NCBI GenBank assembly: GCA_048013815.1 | Contig: CM106586.1 | Coordinates: forward strand, 22,878,001-22,942,000 | DNA: 64,000 nt | Source of the DNA: Setoptus koraiensis | Lineage: Eukaryota; Animalia; Arthropoda | Direction: 5' to 3' | In this document: positions 4,789 through 18,662 of the stretch, piece after piece | How the letters are laid out: each line of letters opens with the position of its first letter | Position numbering within the stretch: the stretch's first letter is position 1 | Translations under genes and position numbers: made by a program | Notes under the pieces: model-generated | Database searches by the model: none | Told to the model about the DNA's origin: nothing | The model's input: only the letters and a program-made list of their open reading frames with translations

Positions 4789-7700
4789 TTATGACAGTAG
4801 ACCTCTCTTCCAAGTTGGTTTACCGCCCGTGTTTTCTTTATTATTACTTCCGAGACTTCTCAAGGATTTTTCTTTTTGTTTCAACTTTTCCTTCTGACTC
4901 TCTCGTTGCTTCTTCTCTAGTATTTTCTTTTCTTTCTCAATTTCGGCCCTCATTTCTCTAATCTTCTTTTTAAGTAGATTTCTGTCATTTGAGTTGAGAA
5001 CACCCAAGCCTTTTAAGACAGTGCTATCTAGATTAATCAGAGACTGCCCATTGACGTTGCGGTCCTCAAATTTTGATATATATTGATCCAGTCCCAACGC
5101 GAGTAACCAAGTGCTGACTTGAGTGGTTGTCCATTCCGATACTAAACGCAATAAAATAATTAAAATAAGAAGCAAAGTTAGAAAAGAATAAACTTATAGG
5201 TATAGGGAATGAGAGGTATCGTCATATAATAGTTACCTGGCTTCTCATGCCACTCAACTGTTTCATATGGAACTTGAATATTGCTGACCGGAACGAAATT
5301 TGATGAGCTAGCCGAAGAAATTGGCAGATTGGATCGCTGTTGACTAAGTTGTGACTTAGAGCTTGATGCGCTAATTGTTAAGTTTGTATCACCCATAGGT
5401 AGATTACTACTTGTTGAGGCGCCCATAGGTCCTACAAAAGATAAACTATTGAGTGAAGCCGAGGAGGTATAGGAATTCACTGAATCTGGCGGAGATGGCT
5501 GGTGTAATGAGAGGCGATTATGAGCGATTTTAGATATATTTGAGCTGTTTATCATTATGGGCGCTTGGCTATGGCGATTGCTTGACTGTACAATGGACAC
5601 ATTTGTTTGTTGTTGTTGCTTTGTTGTTGGACAAATTGTCGAATCAATTTGACGTTGGTCATATTGGTTGTTACCATTTGATGCACTCATTGTTGAGGCT
5701 ATAGAGGACATCCGTTGGATCACATTAAATTTAGTTGGATTTTGTTGCAGTTGTGTTGTTGGGATGGCTGTGGTTGCATGTTGCAACAGATTATTTTGAC
5801 TATCAGTAGTGATCTGATGATGATCAGTTAATATATTATCACTTATTAGACTCAATGAAGTAGGTTCAAAGGAGTTTGAAATGACCTCATGATCATTATT
5901 ATTATTGTGTCCCAACCCATCACTAGTCAGTAGATTAATTGAATGATGATTCATATTATCATCAAGCTGACTCGTCATGATATGATGATCTGAGAGCCGA
6001 GATCCAGTTGGTTGTTGTTGCATTGCCATGTCCTCCATTCCTACCATAGTTGAGCAACTTGTTGTACCCTGAAGTGATTTGGCCGTCTGGTCGAACACGT
6101 CAGGAATATTGATATGCTGTCTGAGTATATTTAGAACACGTTGTCGTATCTCAGGATTTCCTGTTTTTTTATTATAATCGCTTAGAACGGCTCTCAGGCA
6201 GCTTTGTGCCCCAAACGAAGTGTTCGTTTCGGCGACGGATTGATATGGATTATTTGGTGTGGCTATAGGTGTTCGATTCGCACCTGAATTTGATTTATTC
6301 TGTTCCATTTGTTCTAGTTTTGAGCTAAGAGAAGCAACAAAAGAGCTCAGTTCATTTTCTATTTCGTCAATTTTTTGTTGATAAATCTGTTCGCGTCGAC
6401 TAAAACTTTGTTCTCTCAACTGCATCTCTTTAATAATCTTCTTCGCCCGGTGATATTTCTTTTCCAAGAGTTGACTTGAATCTTTAAATTCATTCAATTT
6501 GGCAACATGCTGATCTGACTCGTCTTTAATCGCTTGCATACGTTGACCTAGATTAGCTATTTCCTCTTTATTAGCGCTTATTGTTTCGTCCATAGATTTT
6601 ATTTGGATTGCATGATCACTTTTTGCGCAATCAAGATCTTTAACTACTTGATAGTACTGTCCTTGGAGGTCGCGCATATTCTGTTCGAGAATTTGCTTCA
6701 TTTTGGCCTCCTGCTCTAGGAACTCAATTCGAAGCTTCCTGGAATCATCTTCAGACATAACGTGAGGTTGTTGTAGTCGCTGATGTTGTTGGTCATCCTC
6801 ATTAGATTGCTTATCAAAACCTATAAGATTTTTCGTACAGGGGAAGAACATGGACATTATTGGTGATTAGAAAATCAAGAAACTCATGAGAGTGGGTAGA
6901 GGCACAGTAATAAGCAAGCAATTGTGCAGATTAGTTCAGAGCAATTTTTTTATTCAAGATCAAGTTCGAAAAAGATGTAGAGGATAGACTAAAGATAGAC
7001 AGTTCTAGGTGAATGAATAATGAACGCCCCCACTAATTCAGTTGTTCTGTCAGTTGATTTTGTTACAGATGACGATCATGGGAAACGATGGTTTCGTTAG
7101 AGGCTTAGTATATGTTTCGTATCACACGATAGGCAGGGCCAGTTTCAGGGAGAGAAAAAACACAATATGAGGATAGCAAATGGAATAGAACGATCTACAT
7201 AGAAGTAGTTTGGACGTTATCAAACTCAAGCTATTCCACTATCAGATACACCTAAACTTGAGGTCGCGTCGTATGTGATGCGACATATAGATGAGAGATG
7301 GACCATTTCCGATATACATGTAAACATCGACATAAAAACAGGAGTAAGATTGATACATTTACTAGACTTCGGAAAGTATTTTATGATTGATGCAACTGAG
7401 TTGTCGAGATTGGGTTAGCATAGTTGATTCATCTGTGAATCTGAGATGCAGCAAATGAAGTATAGTCGAAGGACATGACAGCATAAATTGCACCATGGCC
7501 ACCGATGATGACAACAATCGGTGGCATTGTAGAATGCAAATTATATTCACTTCAACTAGACAGTTTCCAACTCTTATGGTCATAATGTCCATCGATGTTG
7601 TTGTACAATTGACTCAAGACAGACTAAAAATAGAGTGTCAGAATTACCGCTTTAGAGCACAATAGTCCTCCACGCGCATCTGATACAACGCCTCCACTAA

Positions 7701-10700
7701 TTTGAGTCACAATTTGGTCTAATCAGTAAAGTGACTTGCTGAGGGAGTCAATCAAAACAATAGTTGTTAATACACTTTCACCCATCTACTGAATCTATTC
7801 TTGACTGATAACAAAGATAACAATATCAACACTTTGCGTGTGTCCAATCTATCTTGGTACCACTGTAACGAAATGAGGATACCCACTAATAAAGGTCAAT
7901 ATGTGAGCGTGATCAAAAACAAAAAGATGTAGCTCGCTAGAGAACACACAGCAAACAAGTGTCTCTTGTATTTAGAATAATTGTGCGTGTGTGTGTAATA
8001 AGGGTAGTGCCAAGTTTAGATTGAGCAACGACAACTGTTAAACAAATTTTCTTTACACTTATTGCAGATGCACTTGTTGCTTTCATTAGGAACACCACCA
8101 CCACCACTACCATCATCAACAACAAACAAACAAACAGACAAATCGGGCCAACTGACTGGCTTGTTCAACTAGAGCTCGACTCAAAAGAGATAGTAATCTG
8201 CGATCATTCGGAAAGTTGTGGCCGCCCACGTATTGTAGGCGGCAAGTAGCAACAACTTCTTTCAACCTCTCTGTTCTGGCAGCTTGGCAGAGTTTAGATC
8301 GTGGTCGGTGTTAGTAGTACGTAGTGTGGTAGTTAATATTATCATAAAATTGACTGAGTATTATAACTAGTAGACTTAAACTATTAACTGCTTAACCCAT
8401 TCTCTCTGTCATCCTTTTAAGGAGACGCAGATGACTAAGACATGAACGATTAGGGTAGAGAAAAAAATGTGATATCATGCTTAAATTCAATAACTGTCTA
8501 AAAGAGAAAGTTTTTGCTTTTTAGCAAACACAACGAATGTTCAACCGAACGAGCTGGTCTAAGTCTACGGTCTAGTCATAACAACATATGTTCAATGTGT
8601 GAGTTTCTTAACTGCGCGATCTTGAAAACCACACTATTCACCCCAGTAGCGAGTGGTAATAATTAGTTAGAATTGTTGCTGAACAAATAAGCACCAATTC
8701 GAAAGAAGTTTGAGTTCAACAAAAATGTCTGCCTGCCTCCTTTGTAGGAGAAGTCAATCAAAACCGCAATCTCTTCTACCTCTTGTATCTCTTTCAATGT
8801 TCCTCATCTCTTGAAACAATTTCGGCCATTCATTTCTCTCATCTAATCTGTTTAGTATTCAAAATAATTGTCGTTCGAAGCTGAGAATGAAAAAATCATT
8901 GCAAATACCTCAATAATACACACAGATGTGACACAAAGTAGATGGTCATCAATGTATGCATTGTGTGCAATCCAAAATGAAAAACATCTATAAAGAATCA
9001 GTTCTCATTAACAATAGTAAATCAGAACCTCATAGAACAAGTTGTAATTAATCATCAACTCACACGATTAGTAAAGATAGGGATGCCAAATTGCACAGCA
9101 AATTCCTTAGAAAAAAATGCAACCACCCCATGATATGTTTCGAGACCATCAGAGAGAACATGCCGATAAATCACAGTTCGATCGAGATTCACACACAATA
9201 GCTCAAAAGCAAAAAGTTTCAAAAATTGCCAAAACATGTTTACTAGCCGATAAGACTACGAAGACTGAGAAGATGGTAAGTGGTACTAGTGAATCGGAAT
9301 CGATCCCTAATCACTAAAACATTTCGTGTGTATCGCGTATGCAAATATATTAATCATGAAGTTCTATCTTTTTTTTTGCACTAAATTTATAAACAAAACA
9401 ACAATCTCTAGCAGCCTTCCGATCTCGTTTCTCACAACACTCACAAAGAGGCCCTGTTGAGATGGGCACAAACAACCACTGAAGGATACTTCGACGTAAA
9501 AGTGACCAACATGACCTCTAGCTGGAGAGATGGTCTTGCGTTCAATTCAATCATTCATCGCAACAGACCTGACCTGATTGACTACCGAGCTTGCCGAAAT
9601 CATACGGCTAGAGAAAATCTAGAGAGTGCTTTTCATGTAGCTCAACACCAACTGGGTATTAAACGCCTTTTAGAGCCTCAAGATGTTGATTTGTCTCGAC
9701 CAGACGAGAAATCAATGATTGCCTACTTGGGTCAACTTTATCGACTCTTTCCAAAGCCACCATCATCAACATCGTGTAACAGTCTATTATTAGATGATAA
9801 CGATGATGGAAAAATCAAGCGTATCGGTGAATCCAACAAAAAGCACACTGCTAGTCGATTATTAAATTGCATCAAGGAGTCAACAGTTAAACTTGATACA
9901 ACAAACAGATTGATAGTCACGATAAGTAAATCGCTACAACCGATTTGCATGCTGTTAGCATTACTTTTTCTAACGATAACTCCGTGTGCAGTAACGGCCA
10001 TTGATCAAATCAATTCAACAGCGCCCAGCTCTCCCGATGCCAACAACAACAGACTTAGCTTAGAGGATGCCGTTAACTTGCCAACAATTCATACAATCAA
10101 TAACAACAACAACAATAGTCCTATTGATACAACGAATTCAACTAGCATAGACGCCATTGTTAATTCGGCTTTTGACGACGTTAACACAACCACCAACAGC
10201 AACGATAAAAATAACACTAATAATAACAATGATGTTCCATCATACTTGACTCCATTTGCTGGACTAAGCCCAATGAACACGGGAATTAATTCAGATATAC
10301 CTCCGCCTGAGGATAAGCAAAGAACTCTGGAAGTTGTTAGACAGGCGCACCAAAACCTATTAGAGCCAGTGATAAAGACAAACAAGTCCAGCTCCTTCCT
10401 ATCTTGTGAAACAGGCGAAATGATAGTTAAAATAAATTTCACTGAACCATTCCGTGGAGTAGCCTATGCAGATTATGATCGTTCATCGCCATGCAAATTT
10501 TTCGGCGATGGCGGCGACTATTATGAGTTACGTTTACCTTTGAAAGGCTGCGGAACTAAACAAGAAGCGCCAAGATTGTTTTTAAATAACATTATAGTTA
10601 GATATCATCGTCTGTTAGAGCTGGAAGAGGACGAAATCAAAACAATTGTGTGCCGTTATCCACCACCCCAGGCACCGCCACCACCCCCTCCACCGGTGGG

Positions 10701-13700
10701 TCCACCCGAGAGAATGTAAGTGTTTATGCATGGCAATGCAGCCTGTTTCAGGTGAATTCAACATGCTATTCAGCATTCGACAATTACAAACAATAGAATG
10801 ATTCAATGCTAGTTGATAAATTAGTTGATTAGCATCATCATGAAGAGAGCCTGTTCCGAGTGAAGCAGCAACAATTAGTTCGCATGACTTAATGATCCAG
10901 ATGTCAATTCTTTCTTTAGGTGACTTGATGCACCACAAGTTGCATCTAAACTTGATATTATCGAGAGTCTAAGATCAAGATAATGTGAAAAAGATTGTGA
11001 GTGATCCATGTGAGCTATGCGTGTTCTAGTAGCGTGATAGTTCTATGATCTCATCATTTGGTATATTTGTTTGCCATTTGCATTTTCTGTCTGTAGATTA
11101 GCACGACTGACCATAGGTGTAGATTAGTATTCTCCTCAAATGGCCTATTGAATATGGGATCAGTCATTGGCTCGAGTCTATGTCACTCCACTAAGTTTTT
11201 TGATGATGATCAGAAGATTGCGAGCATAGATTCTTTCGCTGAATCGTATGTAAATAGGCAAACATGTATCCTAGATAGGACATATGATGATAATCTGTTG
11301 ATGATGCTTGGCTGTTTGCACCGAGCATGTAATCACATTGTTATGTGGCTAACAACAAGTTACCACTCAAATAGGACAAAAAAGTTTACTATTCTCGAGA
11401 TCCCATATAAGCTTGACCGCCGATGGTGCGTAGAAGAAAGTGGAAACAAGATCATCAACTTGAATGATTACCATCATTGTCCCCCGGACGCGTTTGACAT
11501 AATCATGACTAGACACGATTGGTGTGTGAGTAAAACCGCTGATATAGTTGGCAAGATTCTAACATTCACATTACTCTCACACTTGTCAGTCATTCAGAGT
11601 CTCCTAGTTTTCTAGGAGAATGATATTAACTTGATAATTGTCCATGTTAAACGCAGACAAGTTTAGGAAGCTGGCATCGCGGTCTCCTCTAAATTATGAG
11701 TTCATTATGAAGAGGGCGAGCTTGACCATTGACCAGATGGAGTTAACTTGAATTGTAGGAGTTAACAACAATTAACGTATATTTAATTGTATCCCACTTA
11801 GTTTGATGATAATCACTGCATAGGGACAATCATGAGTTAACAACAACTGCCTTCAGTGCAGTCTCATGAAATTGCTTAGAATAATAATTATATCTGCTAA
11901 TTTCAATTTTCTTCCTATTCTATGATGACAGTATTGATGCACCACCTGAGCCGGCCAAATTAACACAGTATGAACCGTTGGTCATTATTGCGGGCCTGCT
12001 ATTTTTCACTCTCATGATGCTGGGACTGGGCACGGGCTCCTATCTGGTTAAGAGGCGTAATATCAAACCTGTACACACTCCATTGCCACCGCCTCCATTA
12101 ATGGGCCAAACTGATCATGAGACCTATCTGGACAATCAATCGATAATAACCACTCAAGATATTGACATTATAAACAAAAACACTCTATTCTATGCTCAAC
12201 CTCATCTTGATACTCAATACTTGGATGAAACATTCGTGACTACAACTCATGAAATAGACACTCATGATGATATTACACATCACACTGATACAAAGTATTT
12301 TAGACCATTAGATGTGGGCACACAAGATTTAGAAGACACTTATATCACGAATCACGAAGAAACAACTACAAAAGATGTAAACACTTTGACAAAGTTGACA
12401 CCTATGCCCAAATATTTGGTCAAAAACATTGAAGACACATTTATAACAAAGGTGGACGAGATAGACGAAACAGAGCACTTTAGTACTTTGCACAGGAAAA
12501 AAATTAAAAAACAACAGCCACAGCAAGTTACCTTAAGCAGAACTATGGTAGATGAAACAAAGAGAATAACGGATGATATTACAACTCTTAGTGATACAAT
12601 AACAAGACTAGAGAATATACCCAAACCTATAAAACCTGTATTAACAACTACCGATCAATTTAAACATTTACAAACTATTGTAGATATATTCAAGGAAACT
12701 CACTCTACTGAAGAAACAACAACAACAACTTTTGAACAATCTAGTAGTAGTAATTATGATTCTAGTGTTACAAGAAATAATGTAACTGATGGTCTGAGAA
12801 AGAGATTTGGGCCAAAAATAAGCAGAATGCCCCATTACGATAGAACAACATTGCGTACCCTTTTGATAGAAGATGAAGCATTTAGGTCGCTAGTTATGGA
12901 GACTAGCGATGATCATACTTTAATACCCAGCATCAGACAAAATCCAGATTACACCAATAAATTGACAATAGACACATGGAATCTATTTGAGGAGATAATT
13001 GAGGAGACCTGCTATACACTTAAACATTATCGCCATCATGATACCAGGCTGGAGGAAATGACTTATCACGAGGAGTCCAAAGCTCAAATCTACGAGCGAA
13101 TTGGACAGCAGCAACATTATTATAATTATGATCATGTCAAACAACTACCACCATATGATCATGTCGCAGATCCGGATTTTGATTCGAGAACTTATACCAA
13201 ATCAAGTGGTGAGTCCGAGTCACGCGAAAGCTTATCTCCAGAGCCGTTGAGAAGAATAAAAGGAAGACGTGAAGAGCGACCGACTTATACTTCGTCATCT
13301 AGTGTGCTGAAATACGAACAGCAAAATATTGATAGATTCAAGAAACCTAGCGCCTCGATACCCTCGTTACTTTCAGATCCTGACTTTCAGCCACAAACAT
13401 TTGATGGCGATAACAGTGATGAAGCCTCTATTCCAGACTATGGTGATAATTTGTTTGATGAACCGGCATCATTAAATTCAATTGTGCAGCACCACCAGCC
13501 AACATCGAAAGAAATGTACAGTTATCGCAACAAGGCGTATGTGAATGAAGAGCGACAATATATGGCATCGCCAACAACATCTCACAATAATCATAATGGA
13601 TCAGATAATTATTCTTCTAGACATAAAAGCTCCCATGAATTTCGTGATGAATCACTCGAGCCTACGTTTAGACATCATGCTGATGATAGAGACATCACAA

Positions 13701-16700
13701 CTAACTGGAATGTGCACCAAGAAGCAGTTATCATGGATCCTGATCAGTATGATAATGAAGATAGCTTCCCAGTTTACACTAGATCTGAGGATCAGGACAG
13801 CCCTCATAGAAGCCACAAGAGTAAGAAGTCTTCTTCTGACAGAAGAAGAAATCATCAAAGATGAAATCAATATAACAGAGAGACAGAGAGAGACAGAGAG
13901 ATGTACAGAATAAGAAACCAATCTAATGTACATATAACTGAACATAAATATCATCTTCATCATTACTACCATTGAAGCTATTTGCTGCCATTAGTAAAAT
14001 GAATAATAAAAAAGAGCTGTGTCTCAACTAATTTTTTCAACCATTAACAACAGTATTCCAAACAAAAGTCTATTTGATTGAAAGAGCGAAAGAAAGAAAG
14101 GATAGTCCTCCACAGGACATTATGAGAAAAAGTTTTGAGAGGATTCAATTCCAGCTCACTGAAAACCAGTTGAGCTAGTTGAGTTCTTTGTGGAGAGTCT
14201 ACTTACCATTAACAAACTGTTTTGATACAGAGCTAGCAGGTGATTTTTCTGATGAGTGCATGTTGTTGTTCCCATTATGAAGATGGTAATTTTGTTGTTG
14301 CTGAACCTGATTGTGATCAGGTTGTTCGTCTCCGTCGCTAGAAGCTCCGCCCTCTTGTTCCATAAGTTTCTCTAGCTCATATTCGGCCGAAGCTGTTACA
14401 GGATCTACATCATCATTCCTTCTATCATAGTCTTCAACGGCATGAGTACTGAATATTTTTATTGGATCATGACTGAACTTAACGGCCTTGTGTTTCGCAG
14501 GCGATGATGTTTGCCTTTGCTCTTGATGTTGTCGGTCATTGTCGAGGCACGCGCTTTTTGAAGAAGCCCATCTGTTAGTATTTGACTGATACCGATTATC
14601 ACACCATAATGATTGCTCTTCATCTTCATCATCTGTAGGTGGTAGACCAGATACTTCAGTGTAATAATGTCCATCGGAAAGAATGTGATATTCAACATTA
14701 TCGACTACGACACTACCGCATTCAGTTAGAGCGCCATCAGTTACAAGTGAAGAAGATTTTGTACCCTCACTATTGTATCCAGATAGTTTTTCTAACTGTT
14801 GATGGCTTGAATCTGCACCATCCTCTCCTCTATTCGACTGACCACAACCATCATGATTAACTGCAGGTTCGCAGCTTTTTGAACTCTGTGAGTTCGAACT
14901 ACTTGAGGTATCCTCGCTAGCTAAGCTATGATCATTAGAGCTAGTTGTAGCAGCTTGTTGTCGGACAGTACCATTATTACTGCAGTTGTTATTCGCGTCA
15001 TTAAGTATATCATGTTTCTTATCTTGTGTACACGAAAGTTGTTGTAGCTGTTGCTTCTCTTGCTCATTAACCCACATCTTGCTATTTTTTAGTGTCGATG
15101 GAGTCGTTGATAAACCGGCTTCGTCTTCTATTTTGCAATGCTTCAACTGAATTGCAATATCAACATCACTTTCATCCTGTTTACATTGACTGTCTGCTAG
15201 ACTAGTTGAATTTCTAACTGCAACTTTATTGTTGTGATCCTCTTTGCTATTTAGCCTAGATGCATCAGACTCTACTGAAGTGGCAGTGGATGTAGTGGAT
15301 TTTTTAAAGCCTCTATTGTGAACAGTTACAGTAAAATCTTTAGGCATGGTTGTCGGAGAATCAGCATAATTGTTTTCCAAATCTGTCTGCTCTTTTGTAG
15401 ATTTGTTAGTTTCCAGCGATTCATGGAAATTCGCCTCGGGAGTTGACCAAGATTTCCTACTCAATAACTTTTGTGCCTCCTCTTCTGTCATCATCTCAAC
15501 GTCCTGAAAACATTTGTCGAAGTCTAACGTATCAGGAATTCCACTAATGTCACAGCTGCTCAAGTCTTGTATGTCATTTTCGTGTCCGTTTCTTGTGGTC
15601 AGATCTTGTTGAGCATCATCGGCGATCTTGAGCACTATCTTATCGATAAGATCTTTCGTAGGAGGCAAATTGTTGGTAGATTTAGACAAATCTGCTTCGG
15701 TTTGTTGTTCAGACAAAACAGTTACATTACATCCCTTGTCATTTGTAAGATTTCTAGTCGCTAGTTTGCTGTTTGTGGCAGGGTTTCTTGATGAGGCGTT
15801 AGAATTTTGGCTAGTTACACCGCTTCTAGGCACTGGACGTGGATGTGGTGTCGATTGAGGTGATCTAACTGCTGACATAGATACCTGTGTTTGCTTCAAA
15901 GAAGCTGTAGTTTCATTGGCATTGGTCGTATTATTGTCACTGACTGAATTTGATTTATTGCCTCTGATGCCGACATTACTGCCGACATTAGATGGCGCTG
16001 AATGAGCCGGGGCCATTCTTGAGGATGGTAAACTGGATGATGCATTCGATCTGGCGTTAGACGAGGAGAATGTACGAGAAGGTGACTTGTTGCTCGTTGG
16101 GGATGTATTTGTCATACAACTTGTGTTAATATTATCAGTAGAATTATTTATATGTGAGCTATTCCCGGAGCGTGACACAGGTTGTGCATATCGACCACGC
16201 ACGTTGCTAGGCGGGGATATTTTTGTGCTAGTTTTTGATGCACCATTTGATGAGGCAGTGACAGTTGATTTGTTTGTATCATTACTAGATAAGCGTTCGA
16301 ACACAGCCTTGGCACTGTTGAATCTTGACACTCTACTGGCCGTCCTATTAAGGCCTCTGCCGCTGGTAGCTAAACTTGTGTTAGAGGATGTGTTAGAGGA
16401 TCCAGTGCGATCAATAGATGGTGATCGCCTGCTATTACTTTTGTTGATTTCTTTTGTCGGAGTTGTCCTCGTTGAATCATTCTCGTTGGGGCTCGACATC
16501 TTTGCACCTTGATTCGATGTTAGAGACGCACCTCTTTGTGAAGTTGGCGGATTCGATCGCAATCTGTTTGACGAAGTTGCCATTTGTTTCACAGGTGTTC
16601 TATTTGGACTGTTCTTCACCTGGGATGAAGAGGATATCAAGGGAGAAGAGAGGTTCTTACTGGGCAAGCTATTAGCTTTTGTTTTCTTCTGCGTGTTTGT

Positions 16701-17534
16701 TACCACAACAATTGCTGCTGATGATTGACCAGAGGAAGATAATGAATTTGATGATGTCGATGACGATAATGATGAAGAGGAGGCTGATGATCTGATAGTA
16801 ATAGAGTGTGGTGAAATCTTTTTTGGAGTATCGCCATCATTTTGCCTCCTTGAATCTGCCGAGGGTTCATTTGTTTGACCGCTGGCAGTCCAGTTATTGA
16901 GGCTGAGTGATGAATTAGTTAATTGACTTGAGGACGGTTCTGAAGGTCTACGCTTTGTAACCGAGTTTGAAGTAGTTGATGATGATAGTGCGGATGAATG
17001 ATTTGTACTAATGGTTCGCGCTGACTGAATCCTCGATTGTTGTTGTACAAAAGATGATTTGGCCGGACTAGTAGTAGCACTACCACTATTAGTTTGCATG
17101 TTATTTCCTGATATTGCACGTTGCTGACTGTTACCATTTAAAAAAGATGTCGATGCAGAGATAGGTTTCCCATTTGTGCCTTTAATAGCAGACTGAACTT
17201 TAATTGAGGAATTAGGATTAAGCGATTGAAATATATTTGCAATAGCGCTAACCTTGGTGCCAAGACGTCTAGCCGAGTTACTACTGCTGCATGTATTAAT
17301 TGGATTCTTGCATTTTTTATTGCTATTGATTAGTGTCGATGATTTGTGTTTAATATTTATCTGTTTCTTATCTAAAATAATGATGTCATCTACTATATTC
17401 TGGTTAGTATCAGTTGAGCCGTCTGCATGAATTTGTTCAATTAGATCATTTTGATCAGTTTTGTTTGATTCGCAAACTTCTTGTTCATCTATTTGGTCTG
17501 AATTAGCATTAGCTTTGTCATAGCTCGAGGCCAT
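4789..17534 (-). CDS. Spn: Neurabin/Spinophilin-like PP1 regulatory subunit; exons 17534-14207, 6820-5237, 5141-4789 (about 1754 aa)
   Basis: Contains actin-binding-like [13 protein letters not shown], RVxF-type KAVKF followed by [29 protein letters not shown], a coiled coil [20 protein letters not shown] and a C-terminal SAM ([18 protein letters not shown]...). Both GT-AG introns (14206-6821, 5236-5142) are phase 1-1, and the summed length of 5265 nt is divisible by 3. Confidence 0.88.
9117..13864 (+). CDS. Nested gene: Shot-type CH2 fragment fused to a Papillote-like ZP-N transmembrane protein; exons 9117-9275, 9412(or 9415)-10715, 11932-13864 (about 1131 aa)
   Basis: Donor ATG|GTAAGT at 9276 joins a TAG/CAG tandem acceptor (phase 0). 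Donor AT|GTAAGT at 10716 joins acceptor ACAG at 11931 (phase 2). Domains in order: CH2 ([29 protein letters not shown]), hydrophobic segment [22 protein letters not shown] ([30 protein letters not shown]), polyPro, TM ([18 protein letters not shown], then KRR), long Thr/Asp/His-rich tail. Exon 1 is the least certain part. Confidence 0.78.
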
Positions 17535-18662
17535 TGTGAATGTATTCCAGATCGATTACGAAAGTGACCTCTCATTTTGAGTTGGACACTGTAAATTGCT
17601 TAGCTTGTTTAGTGAAGCAATCAATTGTGTTAGTAGTTGCTTATTGATTTCCGCTCCTCGTGACATATAAAATAGTATGCATATATAACAATTGTATAGT
17701 CTACTTTAGCAGCATTTAAATTTGATTAGAAAAAATATTATGTTGATTGTATCGTAAAAGAATATTGGCTGACAGTTATGTAAGGTGCACAGTTAAAAAC
17801 TTTGTAACTGTGTCTAGATGAACGGTTTAATATCGTTGACTTAAAATCAATAGCTGTGACATAAATTAAGTGCAACACAGTTGAATGTTGCAAAACAAAA
17901 GAAGAGGAATATAAATTTCGGTGAATACAGTTGTGATAATCTATGCCTGCATTGCTGTTATAAGCTGTAAGATACACCTCGTTGCTGTTGGTTCGATATT
18001 ACTATTGAACAGCTGAATGCTTTCTTGATATTTTCCTTCTGTTATCAACATTTTGAGTACATTTATTCACACATGTGATGATATAATAAATCTTATTGGA
18101 GAGTGAGAGACCAGTTATTATTATTCACAATAGTAATCAACTATCAAGTTGTGTGCATATGTGGCTGTGACACATTGACTGACTGACTGATTATTATCAT
18201 TAATTAAAATTTTGCTCAAGATTGTAATGACCTAGACTGTATGATATCACAGAGACAACTATAATGCTATTATTTGTTGGTTTGGTGATCTTTGATGTTA
18301 TCAACCGCAATCGGTTTACTATGTTATGTGATTGCTGTCAGTGGTGAATAGTATCGGCGCAAACAAGTAAATGGTTGCTGTTACTTATTTTGAAAATTGG
18401 ACTTTCCTCAAACTGATAATCGGGCTTATGATGCAATGTATATCTCGCATAGATATAAATATATATCTCTGTATATAACATTCCTTATACTATACAGCGT
18501 TAATATTAATATTATTCTTATGGTGATAGCTAGAAGTGTGACGGCTTTTTTCTTGGCCTCTCTCCTTACTCGAAGCTCATTCTTAGTGGACGGCCGAGTT
18601 TGGTCCAAGCCCATCGTTTTTTCTTTCTTTCTTCGTTCTTTTGCTTATTTATTATGGTGTGA

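Follow-up and report, generated by a model that had tools for sequence, protein, structure and literature searches.

Does a single gene of Setoptus koraiensis, a mite with a small genome, encode both a calponin-homology (CH) domain of spectraplakin type and the ZP-N protein Papillote (Pot), which serves cuticle adhesion, and what kind of protein would such a gene produce? The question was raised by a prediction, made from sequence alone, that Shot and Papillote have been joined in a 64-kb window of this genome (64,000 nucleotides of contig CM106586.1; all coordinates below refer to this window). We find that the chimeric gene is real, that it is expressed, selected and lineage-specific, and that it has a new domain architecture.

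The gene lies on the forward strand. Exon 1 (9117-9275), present in an RNA contig, provides a 53-codon lead that ends in ATG followed by GTAAGT; its ATG at 9117 is kept in the one relative that shares the fusion (L001). Intron 1 (9276-9411; 136 nt, GT..AG, phase 0) is found at the position of the CH1/CH2 linker, as in mite spectraplakin genes. From 9412 to 10719 the forward strand is a single open frame, and the exon at 9412-10715 codes for the second CH domain (CH2), a single plakin helix left as a remnant, a hydrophobic segment and a ZP-N domain with four cysteines. The open frame and a Pfam CH match thus bear out the uninterrupted exon that had been described from CH2 through the hydrophobic segment to ZP-N. 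Intron 2 (10716-11931; 1216 nt, GT..AG, phase 2) is followed by exon 3 (11932-13864, stop codon at 13862-13864), which encodes the end of the stalk, a transmembrane (TM) helix (11978-12046) and a cytoplasmic tail of ~605 aa with repeated acidic T/I-rich motifs. The spliced coding sequence is 3396 nt long (1131 aa) and its sole stop is terminal.

RNA contigs of run X4 contain both splices, 9275^9412 and 10715^11932, each of them GT..AG. One of these contigs joins 9128-9274 to 9411-9700 and skips 136 nt, exactly as the original prediction had placed the splice, so that the CH2 exon is directly seen to be transcribed and spliced. Joining 10715 to 11932 restores, across the exon boundary, sequence that other mites conserve, and exon 3 is represented by contigs at 11932-12181 and 12842-13987. 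A phase-matched exon with a TM and a tail of roughly 600 aa had been anticipated; it is indeed joined in the RNA, but it starts at 11932 and not at the ORF start at 11978. The RNA run is shallow and probably derives from a host-plant sample. No RNA contig covers 9701-10680, so CH2 and ZP-N on one transcript are not directly seen and the expected RNA continuity between them did not materialise in these contigs. Contig depth, a weak measure, is 6.8 over exon 1-CH2 and 2.9-6.1 over the 3' exon. The CH2-pot junction itself is spanned without mismatch by independent contigs of runs X1 and X2/X3, and 9412-9950 contains no consensus donor in either species.

An intact CH2-type domain is encoded at 9439-9753 (+). 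Exon residues 10-114 match Pfam CH with E=4.6e-23 and 81.9 bits, far above the cut-off of 26; the domain thus belongs to the calponin-homology superfamily (PF00307) above the gathering threshold, and AF2 models its fold with pLDDT 88-94. In the PDB it matches only second CH domains of tandem ABDs, with E values of about 1e-33 to 1e-30 for beta-spectrin, plectin and MACF1 CH2, and every column that is invariant among spectraplakin CH2s is retained. The affinity had been assigned to spectraplakins rather than spectrin, and this holds: the proteins that match CH2 best come from mites and carry CH, spectrin, EF-hand and GAS2 domains, as is the case for the two nearest (P0077 and P0075), and the homology continues past CH2. 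The following stretch (9754-9906, +) comprises a disordered linker with lineage-specific insertions and then the first plakin-domain helix. Alignment with spectraplakins (P0041, P0074, P0075, P0077) extends to about exon residue 165, and the suspected decayed start of the plakin region is therefore real. Upstream, the 3' end of exon 1 aligns weakly (E=0.01, one pairwise comparison) to the pre-CH2 exon of two mite spectraplakin loci, and the alignment ends at the same exon boundary; at loci L002 and L011, too, the exon that contains CH2 begins a short way upstream of the domain. A spectraplakin origin of the lead exon is thereby weakly supported.

The rest of a spectraplakin is missing. Searches by tblastn with the CH1 of four proteins gave no match in the 64-kb window or in L001; neither the large ORFs of the window nor tblastn queries with P0075 and P0077 yielded plakin or spectrin sequence; and spectrin repeats, EF-hands, GAS2 and C-tail are absent from the gene and from the 64-kb window. 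The N-terminus is therefore of the CH2-only C type, with no tandem CH1-CH2, and only the first plakin helix remains of the plakin domain and spectrin rod. A spectraplakin-type CH2 has been joined to Papillote as originally proposed, but what was captured is not Shot as a whole; it is a fragment of ~230 aa made up of the lead exon, CH2 and one helix.

Between the end of the spectraplakin homology and the pot Met lie 42 nt (9907-9948, +) that appear to be the former pot 5'UTR and now form 14 codons joining the two parts; the fusion joint probably lies ~42 nt upstream of the pot ATG, in frame. The hydrophobic segment (9949-9999, +; residues 233-249 of 1131) corresponds to the signal peptide of ancestral pot, which has become internal. 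The Met at this point opens the signal peptide in every other pot homologue; in Drosophila Pot that peptide occupies residues 1-32 (PMC1479692). The RNA-supported frame thus has no N-terminal signal peptide; one would be present only in a hypothetical transcript starting near 9900. The segment has a 19-residue Kyte-Doolittle mean of 2.29, its N-side flank carries a charge of +1 and its C-side flank one of -2, and in the AF2 model a single long helix extends from the plakin remnant across it. The segment also retains an h-region of ~10 residues, Pro at -6 and Val/Ala at -3/-1. A short h-region with Pro at -6 and V/A at -3/-1 is typical of cleaved signals under the von Heijne rules. Judged by such sequence rules only, cleavage by signal peptidase is slightly favoured over an uncut product.

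The remainder of the protein is Papillote. An Asn-rich spacer (10000-10398, +), predicted to be extracellular, holds most of the N-X-S/T sequons, of which there are seven in residues 251-500 versus two in the first 228. It is followed by the ZP-N domain (10399-10659, +) with its four conserved cysteines and by a Pro-rich stalk (10660-10715). The profile match that had been called for is sub-threshold (Cuticlin-N/ZP-N, CUT_N; exon residues 330-416, E=0.018), and members of the Papillote family score near the ZP-N/CUT_N cut-offs. The ZP-N call stands on other evidence: C57, C86, C105 and C139 are invariant across 28 homologues, as the four cysteines of a Papillote ZP-N should be; a Foldseek search with the AF2 model of the domain (pLDDT 67) returned uromodulin ZP filaments among its matches (probability 0.98-1.0); and Papillote is described as a ZP-N-only protein (PMC1479692). 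In agreement with that description no ZP-C is present, and ZP-N leads through the stalk to a single TM (residues 504-526; Kyte-Doolittle mean 2.35, C-side flank charge +4) and the long tail. The spliced product has no further Pfam domains. Among the homologues of this part, some from ticks, insects and crustaceans bear the name Papillote or pot (NCBI, UniRef), and best matches and gene neighbourhood together identify it as the Papillote orthologue. A SAM gene (-), pot (+) and a PDZ_5 gene (-) follow one another here, and the same order is common to four other mite loci.

The fusion is confined to a narrow lineage in the sequences searched. Only L001, which is 84% identical, has CH2 and pot together, with the same exon/intron layout; CH2 is absent at pot in five other mite loci, and none lies within 10 kb upstream of pot in four other mites. 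It is not a common annotated isoform of pot, since none of 133 pot homologues carries a CH domain. In the other direction, pot sequence is absent from the best 150 CH2 relatives except for the ORF of the sister species, and we found no paper that combines CH2 or spectraplakin with Papillote terms. The original claim that no described protein has this architecture is thus upheld, and the combination of CH2 with ZP-N appears to be new.

Purifying selection was estimated from a single species pair, the present gene and L001. In this comparison dN/dS is 0.17 for CH2 (p=1.4e-8), 0.013 for ZP-N and 0.27 for the Asn-rich spacer; exon 1 is neutral at about 1.0, and its two indels, of 3 and 18 nt, both preserve the frame. 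All exonic indels (13/13) are multiples of three, as against 12/34 in introns; this includes exon 3 (6/6) and exon 1 with the linker (4/4). Intron 1 is about 60% identical to its counterpart and has indels of lengths not divisible by three, and intron 2 is 40-64% identical, with 11/30 of its indels multiples of three. Frame and splice sites have thus been kept in two lineages at dS of about 0.4-0.56. Disabling changes, which would have spoken against a functional CH2, are absent from it. At the level of coding sequence CH2 is shown to be under purifying selection, a pattern that gene conversion by an unseen parental spectraplakin gene could mimic.

A second kind of constraint is seen at the junction. 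By sliding identity, the most conserved block of the 9.7-kb syntenic locus is at 9856-9975 (unstranded; 97% identical), straddling the fusion junction and the pot ATG; it contains an exact run of 83 nt (9887-9969), of which 62 nt precede the ATG and the other 21 nt begin with it. The block has fewer synonymous changes than the remainder of the exon (p=1.2e-4), and its dN equals dS; over the linker and signal-peptide codons dN is likewise about equal to dS, with strong depletion of synonymous change. The block lacks a codon-like pattern, gives no signal of RNA folding (z -0.8 and -1.2) and matches nothing in Rfam. With conservation of this kind over the pot ATG, a canonical pot transcript could also be made separately, and there is a hint that the block may be an internal promoter, a 5'UTR or some other nucleotide-level element for a shorter pot mRNA.

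We consider the best explanation, and a rather probable one, to be a lineage-specific chimeric gene in which a spectraplakin 5' module was inserted ahead of papillote. Spectraplakin origin is indicated by the spectraplakin-like best relatives of CH2, the homology past CH2 and the matching positions of the intron and lead exon; the captured module probably consisted of the lead exon, its intron and the region from CH2 to the first plakin helix. A Shot/MACF1-like genomic piece would have been inserted between the SAM-domain gene and papillote. Translation would start in exon 1 and yield a precursor whose CH2 folds in the cytosol, while the former signal peptide would act as an internal ER-targeting signal with its N side cytosolic. 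A topology modelled from hydropathy, the charges of the flanks and the places of the sequons would have the glycosylated spacer and ZP-N facing the apical extracellular matrix and the second TM returning the tail to the cytosol. Such a precursor could remain uncut and pass the membrane twice, which would keep CH2 at the membrane beneath ZP-N, or signal peptidase could cut after the retained V-T-A site to give canonical Pot and a separate CH2 fragment, membrane-anchored and then possibly released. A CH2 by itself binds actin weakly if at all. Whether or not the precursor is cut, selection on the CH2 of this gene more likely favours regulatory or protein-protein binding at the apical membrane than a strong anchorage to F-actin.

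Where functional Pot comes from can be read differently. The block at the pot ATG may be the pot core promoter and 5'UTR, most functional Pot then being made from a short canonical mRNA, while an upstream spectraplakin-derived promoter adds a minor CH2-Pot isoform or mainly a regulatory leader. The nucleotide-level conservation of the block, the cleavable features of the signal peptide and the neutral exon 1 favour such a dual-promoter locus, with which the hole in the RNA contigs is also compatible. However, the dN/dS of CH2 shows the upstream ORF to be translated and of consequence, the indels of exon 1 and the linker all stay in frame, and RNA depth over exon 1-CH2, weak as the measure is, at least equals that over the 3' exon. 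We regard two promoters as possible though doubtful, and they are compatible with the chimeric isoform also being real. If instead the signal peptide has turned into an uncleaved signal anchor, the product would be a two-pass apical protein in which a Shot-derived CH2, covalently coupled to extracellular ZP-N, binds the cytoskeleton beneath the matrix. The hydropathy of the segment equals that of the true TM, its flank charges favour N-in, AF2 models a continuous helix, CH2 is under selection, and Pot and Shot share attachment cells in Drosophila. Nevertheless a single-chain tether of this kind seems unlikely: a lone CH2 is not Shot and would hardly bind actin, Shot acts in tendon cells without need for its ABD, and the segment looks like a cleaved signal. 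Were the product uncleaved, it would be a natural 'Rosetta-stone' fusion, suggesting that the spectraplakin C-type N-terminus normally works at Pot-containing apical attachment sites, and one polypeptide would replace a multi-protein cuticle-cytoskeleton link in a miniaturised mite.

Two further readings deny the chimera a function or an existence. A duplicated spectraplakin fragment upstream of pot could be a decaying relic, open by chance and of no protein function; the linker and exon 1 are indeed free of protein-level constraint, and the prior for landing in frame is only about 1 in 3. This reading is largely refuted, and we give it very little credence, by the constraint on CH2, its complete set of invariant residues and modelled fold (pLDDT about 90), its splicing and expression, and the upkeep of frame and splice sites in two lineages. 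Close gene spacing in eriophyoid genomes can produce apparent chimeric transcripts (PMC7738191), and a Shot exon with pot nested in its intron might look similar. An assembly or annotation artefact, or such nesting, is the most improbable of the readings and is ruled out: the same junction occurs in three independent assemblies and in a second species, the chimera is an uninterrupted ORF within one exon and not a transcript contig, no donor site follows CH2, and the 64-kb window and L001 hold no coding sequence for CH1, spectrin, EF-hand or GAS2.

The preferred reading, a chimeric gene, can be set against known systems. Papillote (Drosophila CG2467) and its arthropod orthologues share the four-Cys ZP-N-only ectodomain, Pro-rich stalk, single TM and long tail. 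In the 133 homologues, however, the signal peptide is N-terminal or nearly so and the ZP-N region starts at a median of residue 46, whereas here 232 residues (lead, CH2 and linker) precede the signal sequence. Spectraplakin C-type N-termini (Shot-C, MACF1/dystonin type 3) also splice an alternative lead exon to CH2 without CH1 and have the same type of CH2 sequence and first plakin helix; a disputed TM-bearing lead sequence is mentioned for one dystonin isoform (bioRxiv 10.1101/122010). Unlike the C-type spectraplakins, the present gene has no plakin domain, spectrin rod, EF-hands, GAS2 or C-tail, and since everything after the helix is missing the fusion cannot cross-link actin and microtubules as Shot does. 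Nesprins run from CH-CH to a KASH TM. They and the dystonin TM isoform resemble the fusion in combining cytosolic CH, a membrane span and a lumenal or extracellular interaction module, but theirs are tandem CH1-CH2, long spectrin rods and a short lumenal KASH peptide, in place of a single CH2, no rod and an extracellular ZP-N domain of the polymerisation type. In type II and internal signal-anchor proteins, and in polyproteins with internal cleaved signals, the first hydrophobic targeting sequence likewise comes after a cytosolic N-terminal domain that is folded; the difference here is that a signal peptide of the cleavable type, N-terminal until recently, has become internal through gene fusion.

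The gene at 9117-13864 (+) is a real, expressed, selectively maintained and lineage-specific chimera, in which a spectraplakin-type CH2 domain precedes the ZP-N protein Papillote (Pot). It is transcribed and spliced. The coding sequence comprises 9117-9275, 9412-10715 and 11932-13864, or 1131 codons with one terminal stop, and its junctions are supported by RNA. Contigs of sequencing run X4 behave as RNA, since they carry spliced joints and an adaptor tail. One of them (9128-9274 plus 9411-9700) joins 9274/5 to 9411/2 across a GT..AG intron, exactly at the 9275/9412 splice of the original prediction. A further GT..AG joint links 10715 to 11932, and other RNA contigs lie over 11932-12181 and 12842-13987. 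The predicted third exon is present, but its real start is 46 nt before the ORF start that had been used; the join of exons 2 and 3 restores the stalk-TM sequence, a stretch that is intron-free in other mites. The stretch 9701-10680 has no RNA contig, so the two domains are not seen directly on one RNA. A second gap of 660 nt (12182-12841) falls within exon 3, which argues that the run is simply shallow. The DNA junction between CH2 and pot is solid, being spanned by contigs of runs X1 and X2/X3 with zero mismatch. Neither species has, within 9412-9950, a donor-like site as good as the two real donors, which are both GTAAGT.

Two single-base A>G differences, at 11159 in intron 2 (window versus X2/X3 contigs) and at 13007 in exon 3 (window versus X4), are probably strain polymorphisms. 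In one X1 contig, 13963 is followed by 24 other letters and then by 13025, and run X1 has several loose ends at 10117-10119 and 12729; cross-matches of low-complexity or repeat sequence look a likelier source of these than rearrangements.

The frame is open on the + strand from 9412 to 10719. The Pfam calponin-homology domain occupies residues 10-114 of the 9412 exon (E=4.6e-23, well over threshold), and the only solved structures that match it are second CH domains of tandem actin-binding domains. All columns invariant among spectraplakin CH2 domains are retained. The CH2 and ZP-N halves were modelled separately, with a pLDDT of 88-94 for CH2. The Pfam match to Cuticlin-N/ZP-N at exon residues 330-416 is weak, and members of the pot family score near threshold for ZP-N/CUT_N. 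The ZP-N assignment is supported by four cysteines invariant in 28 homologues and by Foldseek matches of the AF2 model (pLDDT 67), including many uromodulin ZP filaments, at probability 0.98-1.0. The two domains are separated by a hydrophobic segment at 9949-9999, whose 19-residue Kyte-Doolittle mean (2.29) is close to that of the downstream TM (2.35). The earlier observation of a single exon running from CH2 to ZP-N is thus confirmed. The ZP-N assignment also draws on the literature, in which Drosophila Papillote, of 963 aa with a signal peptide at 1-32, is listed as a ZP-N-only protein (PMC1479692).

The arrangement is conserved in two lineages. The 9.8-kb contig L001 of a relative is collinear with 7982-17679 and has in common with it the lead exon, donor, acceptor, CH2-to-ZP-N exon, intron 2, tail exon and the convergent PDZ_5 gene. 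Its product, P0001, is 84% identical and is the only database protein with both the CH2 and pot parts. Neutral divergence between the two loci is substantial (introns ~40-64% identical, dS ~0.4-0.56). By the Nei-Gojobori method on this one species pair, CH2 is under selection, with a dN/dS of 0.17 (28 synonymous versus 22 non-synonymous differences; Fisher p=1.4e-8); the values are 0.27 for the Asn-rich spacer, 0.013 for ZP-N and ~1.0 for exon 1. The linker and signal peptide give ~0.9-1.1 at a dS of only 0.08-0.11. All 13 indels in the three exons, four of which fall in exon 1 and the CH2-linker part, are multiples of three, versus 12 of 34 in introns. The dN/dS values, the in-frame indels and the lack of an internal donor together point to a translated CH2 whose sequence matters, with nothing to halt translation on its way into pot. 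The lead-exon ORF of L001 reaches 48 codons further 5', to an ATG at L001:1011 (L001:1011-1154 versus window 8977-9051). From the window counterpart, the ATG at 8977, only an out-of-frame uORF of 24 codons can be read before TAA 9049-9051, which leaves 9117 (L001:1155) as the conserved start.

The nearest relatives of the CH2 domain (59-66%) are small mite spectraplakins of ~1,200-1,260 aa, which start at CH2 and continue with spectrin repeats, EF-hands and GAS2. In three mite loci (L002:1448-5167, L011:4001-7771 and L012:2275-5898) such a compact spectraplakin is one long exon that starts at CH2, without CH1 in that exon, followed by a few spectrin repeats and EF-hands; a GAS2 match was recorded for L002 and L011 and not for L012. 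L002 and L011 have a separate lead exon with the conserved terminal motif K-T-T-T-I-x-x-G-x-x-E-K. The CH2 exon of the chimera opens at the CH1/CH2 linker, the same place as in the mite spectraplakin genes, and spectraplakin homology runs past CH2 through the first plakin-domain helix, stopping ~14 codons before the pot Met. BLASTP of window exon 1 against the spectraplakin lead exons found nothing. The end of the longer L001 lead exon aligns weakly to the exon before CH2 in two spectraplakin loci, at the exact equivalent exon end, and this positionally consistent match, confined to the sister species, is suggestive of a spectraplakin origin for the lead exon. Spectraplakin "C-type" isoforms use an alternative promoter and join a lead sequence to CH2, skipping CH1 (bioRxiv 10.1101/122010). 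In the simplest history, a genomic, intron-containing copy of a C-type-like 5' module would have landed in frame in the 5' region of pot.

Coding sequence for CH1, spectrin, EF-hand or GAS2 is absent from the 64-kb window and from L001, which indicates a captured fragment, not Shot itself. The original prediction that Shot and Papillote have been joined is therefore upheld in part: the architecture, expression and selection stand, as do the spectraplakin and Papillote origins, but whole Shot is replaced by a fragment from CH2 to the first plakin helix. A Shot exon with pot nested in its intron is ruled out by the same absence over 64 kb, by the lack of a donor after CH2 and by flanking genes that are unrelated and on both strands. 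A retrocopy is ruled out by the intron kept before CH2 at the spectraplakin position.

The pot part is a Papillote orthologue; among its homologues are tick, insect and crustacean proteins that carry the name pot or papillote. It lies in a conserved neighbourhood, with a SAM-domain gene at 4789-6857 (-) upstream and, at 14199-17534 (-), an intronless 1111-aa ORF, rich in Ser/Asn/Thr, with a C-terminal PDZ_5 domain. This order and orientation is the same in four other mite contigs, and the PDZ_5 gene is the convergent neighbour of pot in every mite locus examined. CH2 is absent from the 10 kb upstream of pot in the four syntenic mite loci and in a further locus, L005. The pot ORF of four other mites (L007-L010) is only ~415-460 aa, with a short tail, and its 3' end overlaps that of the convergent PDZ_5 gene by ~85-145 nt; the window tail is ~605 aa, and the two stops (13864 and 14199) are 335 nt apart.

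The combination of CH2, internal signal, ZP-N and TM was not found elsewhere in the searches made. Of 133 pot homologues, 87 exceed 700 aa and come from mites, ticks, spiders, horseshoe crabs, crustaceans and insects; in the whole set only P0001 has CH2, so the chimera is not a common annotated pot isoform. One pot homologue, P0251, with ZP-N from residue 424, has an N-terminal extension without CH or any other domain. Conversely, the best 150 CH2 relatives from 1.84 billion representatives include pot sequence in P0001 only. A metagenome scan for further fused loci yielded four pot loci, none with CH2; a search for partial proteins that run from CH2 into the signal peptide, such as RNA-derived ORFs or further species might give, found none, and no paper in the literature searched pairs "calponin homology" with ZP-N or papillote. 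Sequence words of the locus do occur in phyllosphere metagenomes, which fits an eriophyoid mite. Genomes of these mites are ~32-35 Mb in two chromosomes, with very little space between genes and introns lost on a massive scale (PMC11879100, PMC7738191).

Within the syntenic 9.7 kb, conservation peaks at 9856-9975, where the two species are 97% identical and the 83 nt of 9887-9969 match exactly; this block covers the last spectraplakin-derived helix, the presumed former pot 5'UTR and the first seven signal-peptide codons. The few substitutions in it are non-synonymous, and silent ones are scarcer than in the remainder of the exon (p=1.2e-4), so the constraint acts on nucleotides, not codons. 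Structured RNA is not supported there (fold z-scores -0.8 and -1.2), nor is there an Rfam match. TATA-like and Inr-like strings were spotted by eye; their spacing is atypical and they are not counted as evidence. The most economical reading is a surviving pot core promoter, 5'UTR or start context, in which case the locus may also yield a shorter, canonical pot mRNA beside the chimeric one. That an internal pot promoter actually gives such a second mRNA is suggested by the nucleotide-level constraint around the pot ATG, but we consider it somewhat improbable. The RNA depths (6.8 over exon 1-CH2 versus 2.9-6.1 downstream) lend no support to a dominant internal promoter, although contig depth is a poor measure. 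Dual promoters are compatible with the chimera also being functional. A second, non-coding block at 8178-8720, ~400-900 bp upstream of exon 1, is ~85-94% identical to the relative, a level above that of the CH2 coding sequence. None of its frames holds an ORF and its mismatches are not 3-periodic (18/18/22); it has a GC-rich inverted repeat near 8225-8247, no Rfam match and zero RNA contig depth over 8400-8720. It could serve the chimeric gene as promoter or enhancer, or be an unannotated ncRNA.

Translation would begin in exon 1, at the conserved ATG 9117 or at the exon 1-terminal ATG of both species; CH2 would then take up its fold on the cytosolic side, with the former signal peptide serving as an internal targeting signal. 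An N-in orientation is favoured by the charges flanking the hydrophobic segment (+1 N-terminal to it, -2 C-terminal to it). Of the nine N-X-S/T sequons that precede the TM, seven fall in the predicted ectodomain, and the C-side flank of the TM has a charge of +4. By these features both termini are predicted to be cytosolic, and the spacer and ZP-N extracellular. The single-chain tether from cuticle to cytoskeleton originally proposed would have this topology with the segment uncleaved; we regard it as unlikely, since published work speaks against a strong actin tether. In both species the segment has a short h-region (~10 residues), with Pro at position -6 and Val/Ala at -3/-1, and by the classical (-3,-1) rule and the length of the h-region it is predicted to be cleaved by signal peptidase. 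If cleaved, the gene would act like a small polyprotein, giving canonical Pot and a CH2 fragment.

The fusion partners derive from proteins that act in the same Drosophila epidermal attachment cells, which leads to the hypothesis that a CH2-only spectraplakin N-terminus may act at the apical, Pot-bearing membrane. For Shot, the role of such an N-terminus "has never been addressed", according to a review. Through the fusion, a signal that had been N-terminal became internal; the locus offers a natural experiment on the conversion of signal peptides into signal anchors or into sites of internal cleavage. Evidence-backed young chimeras in which a cytosolic domain precedes a signal peptide seem uncommon. 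The fusion event itself is of a known kind; the resulting architecture is new.
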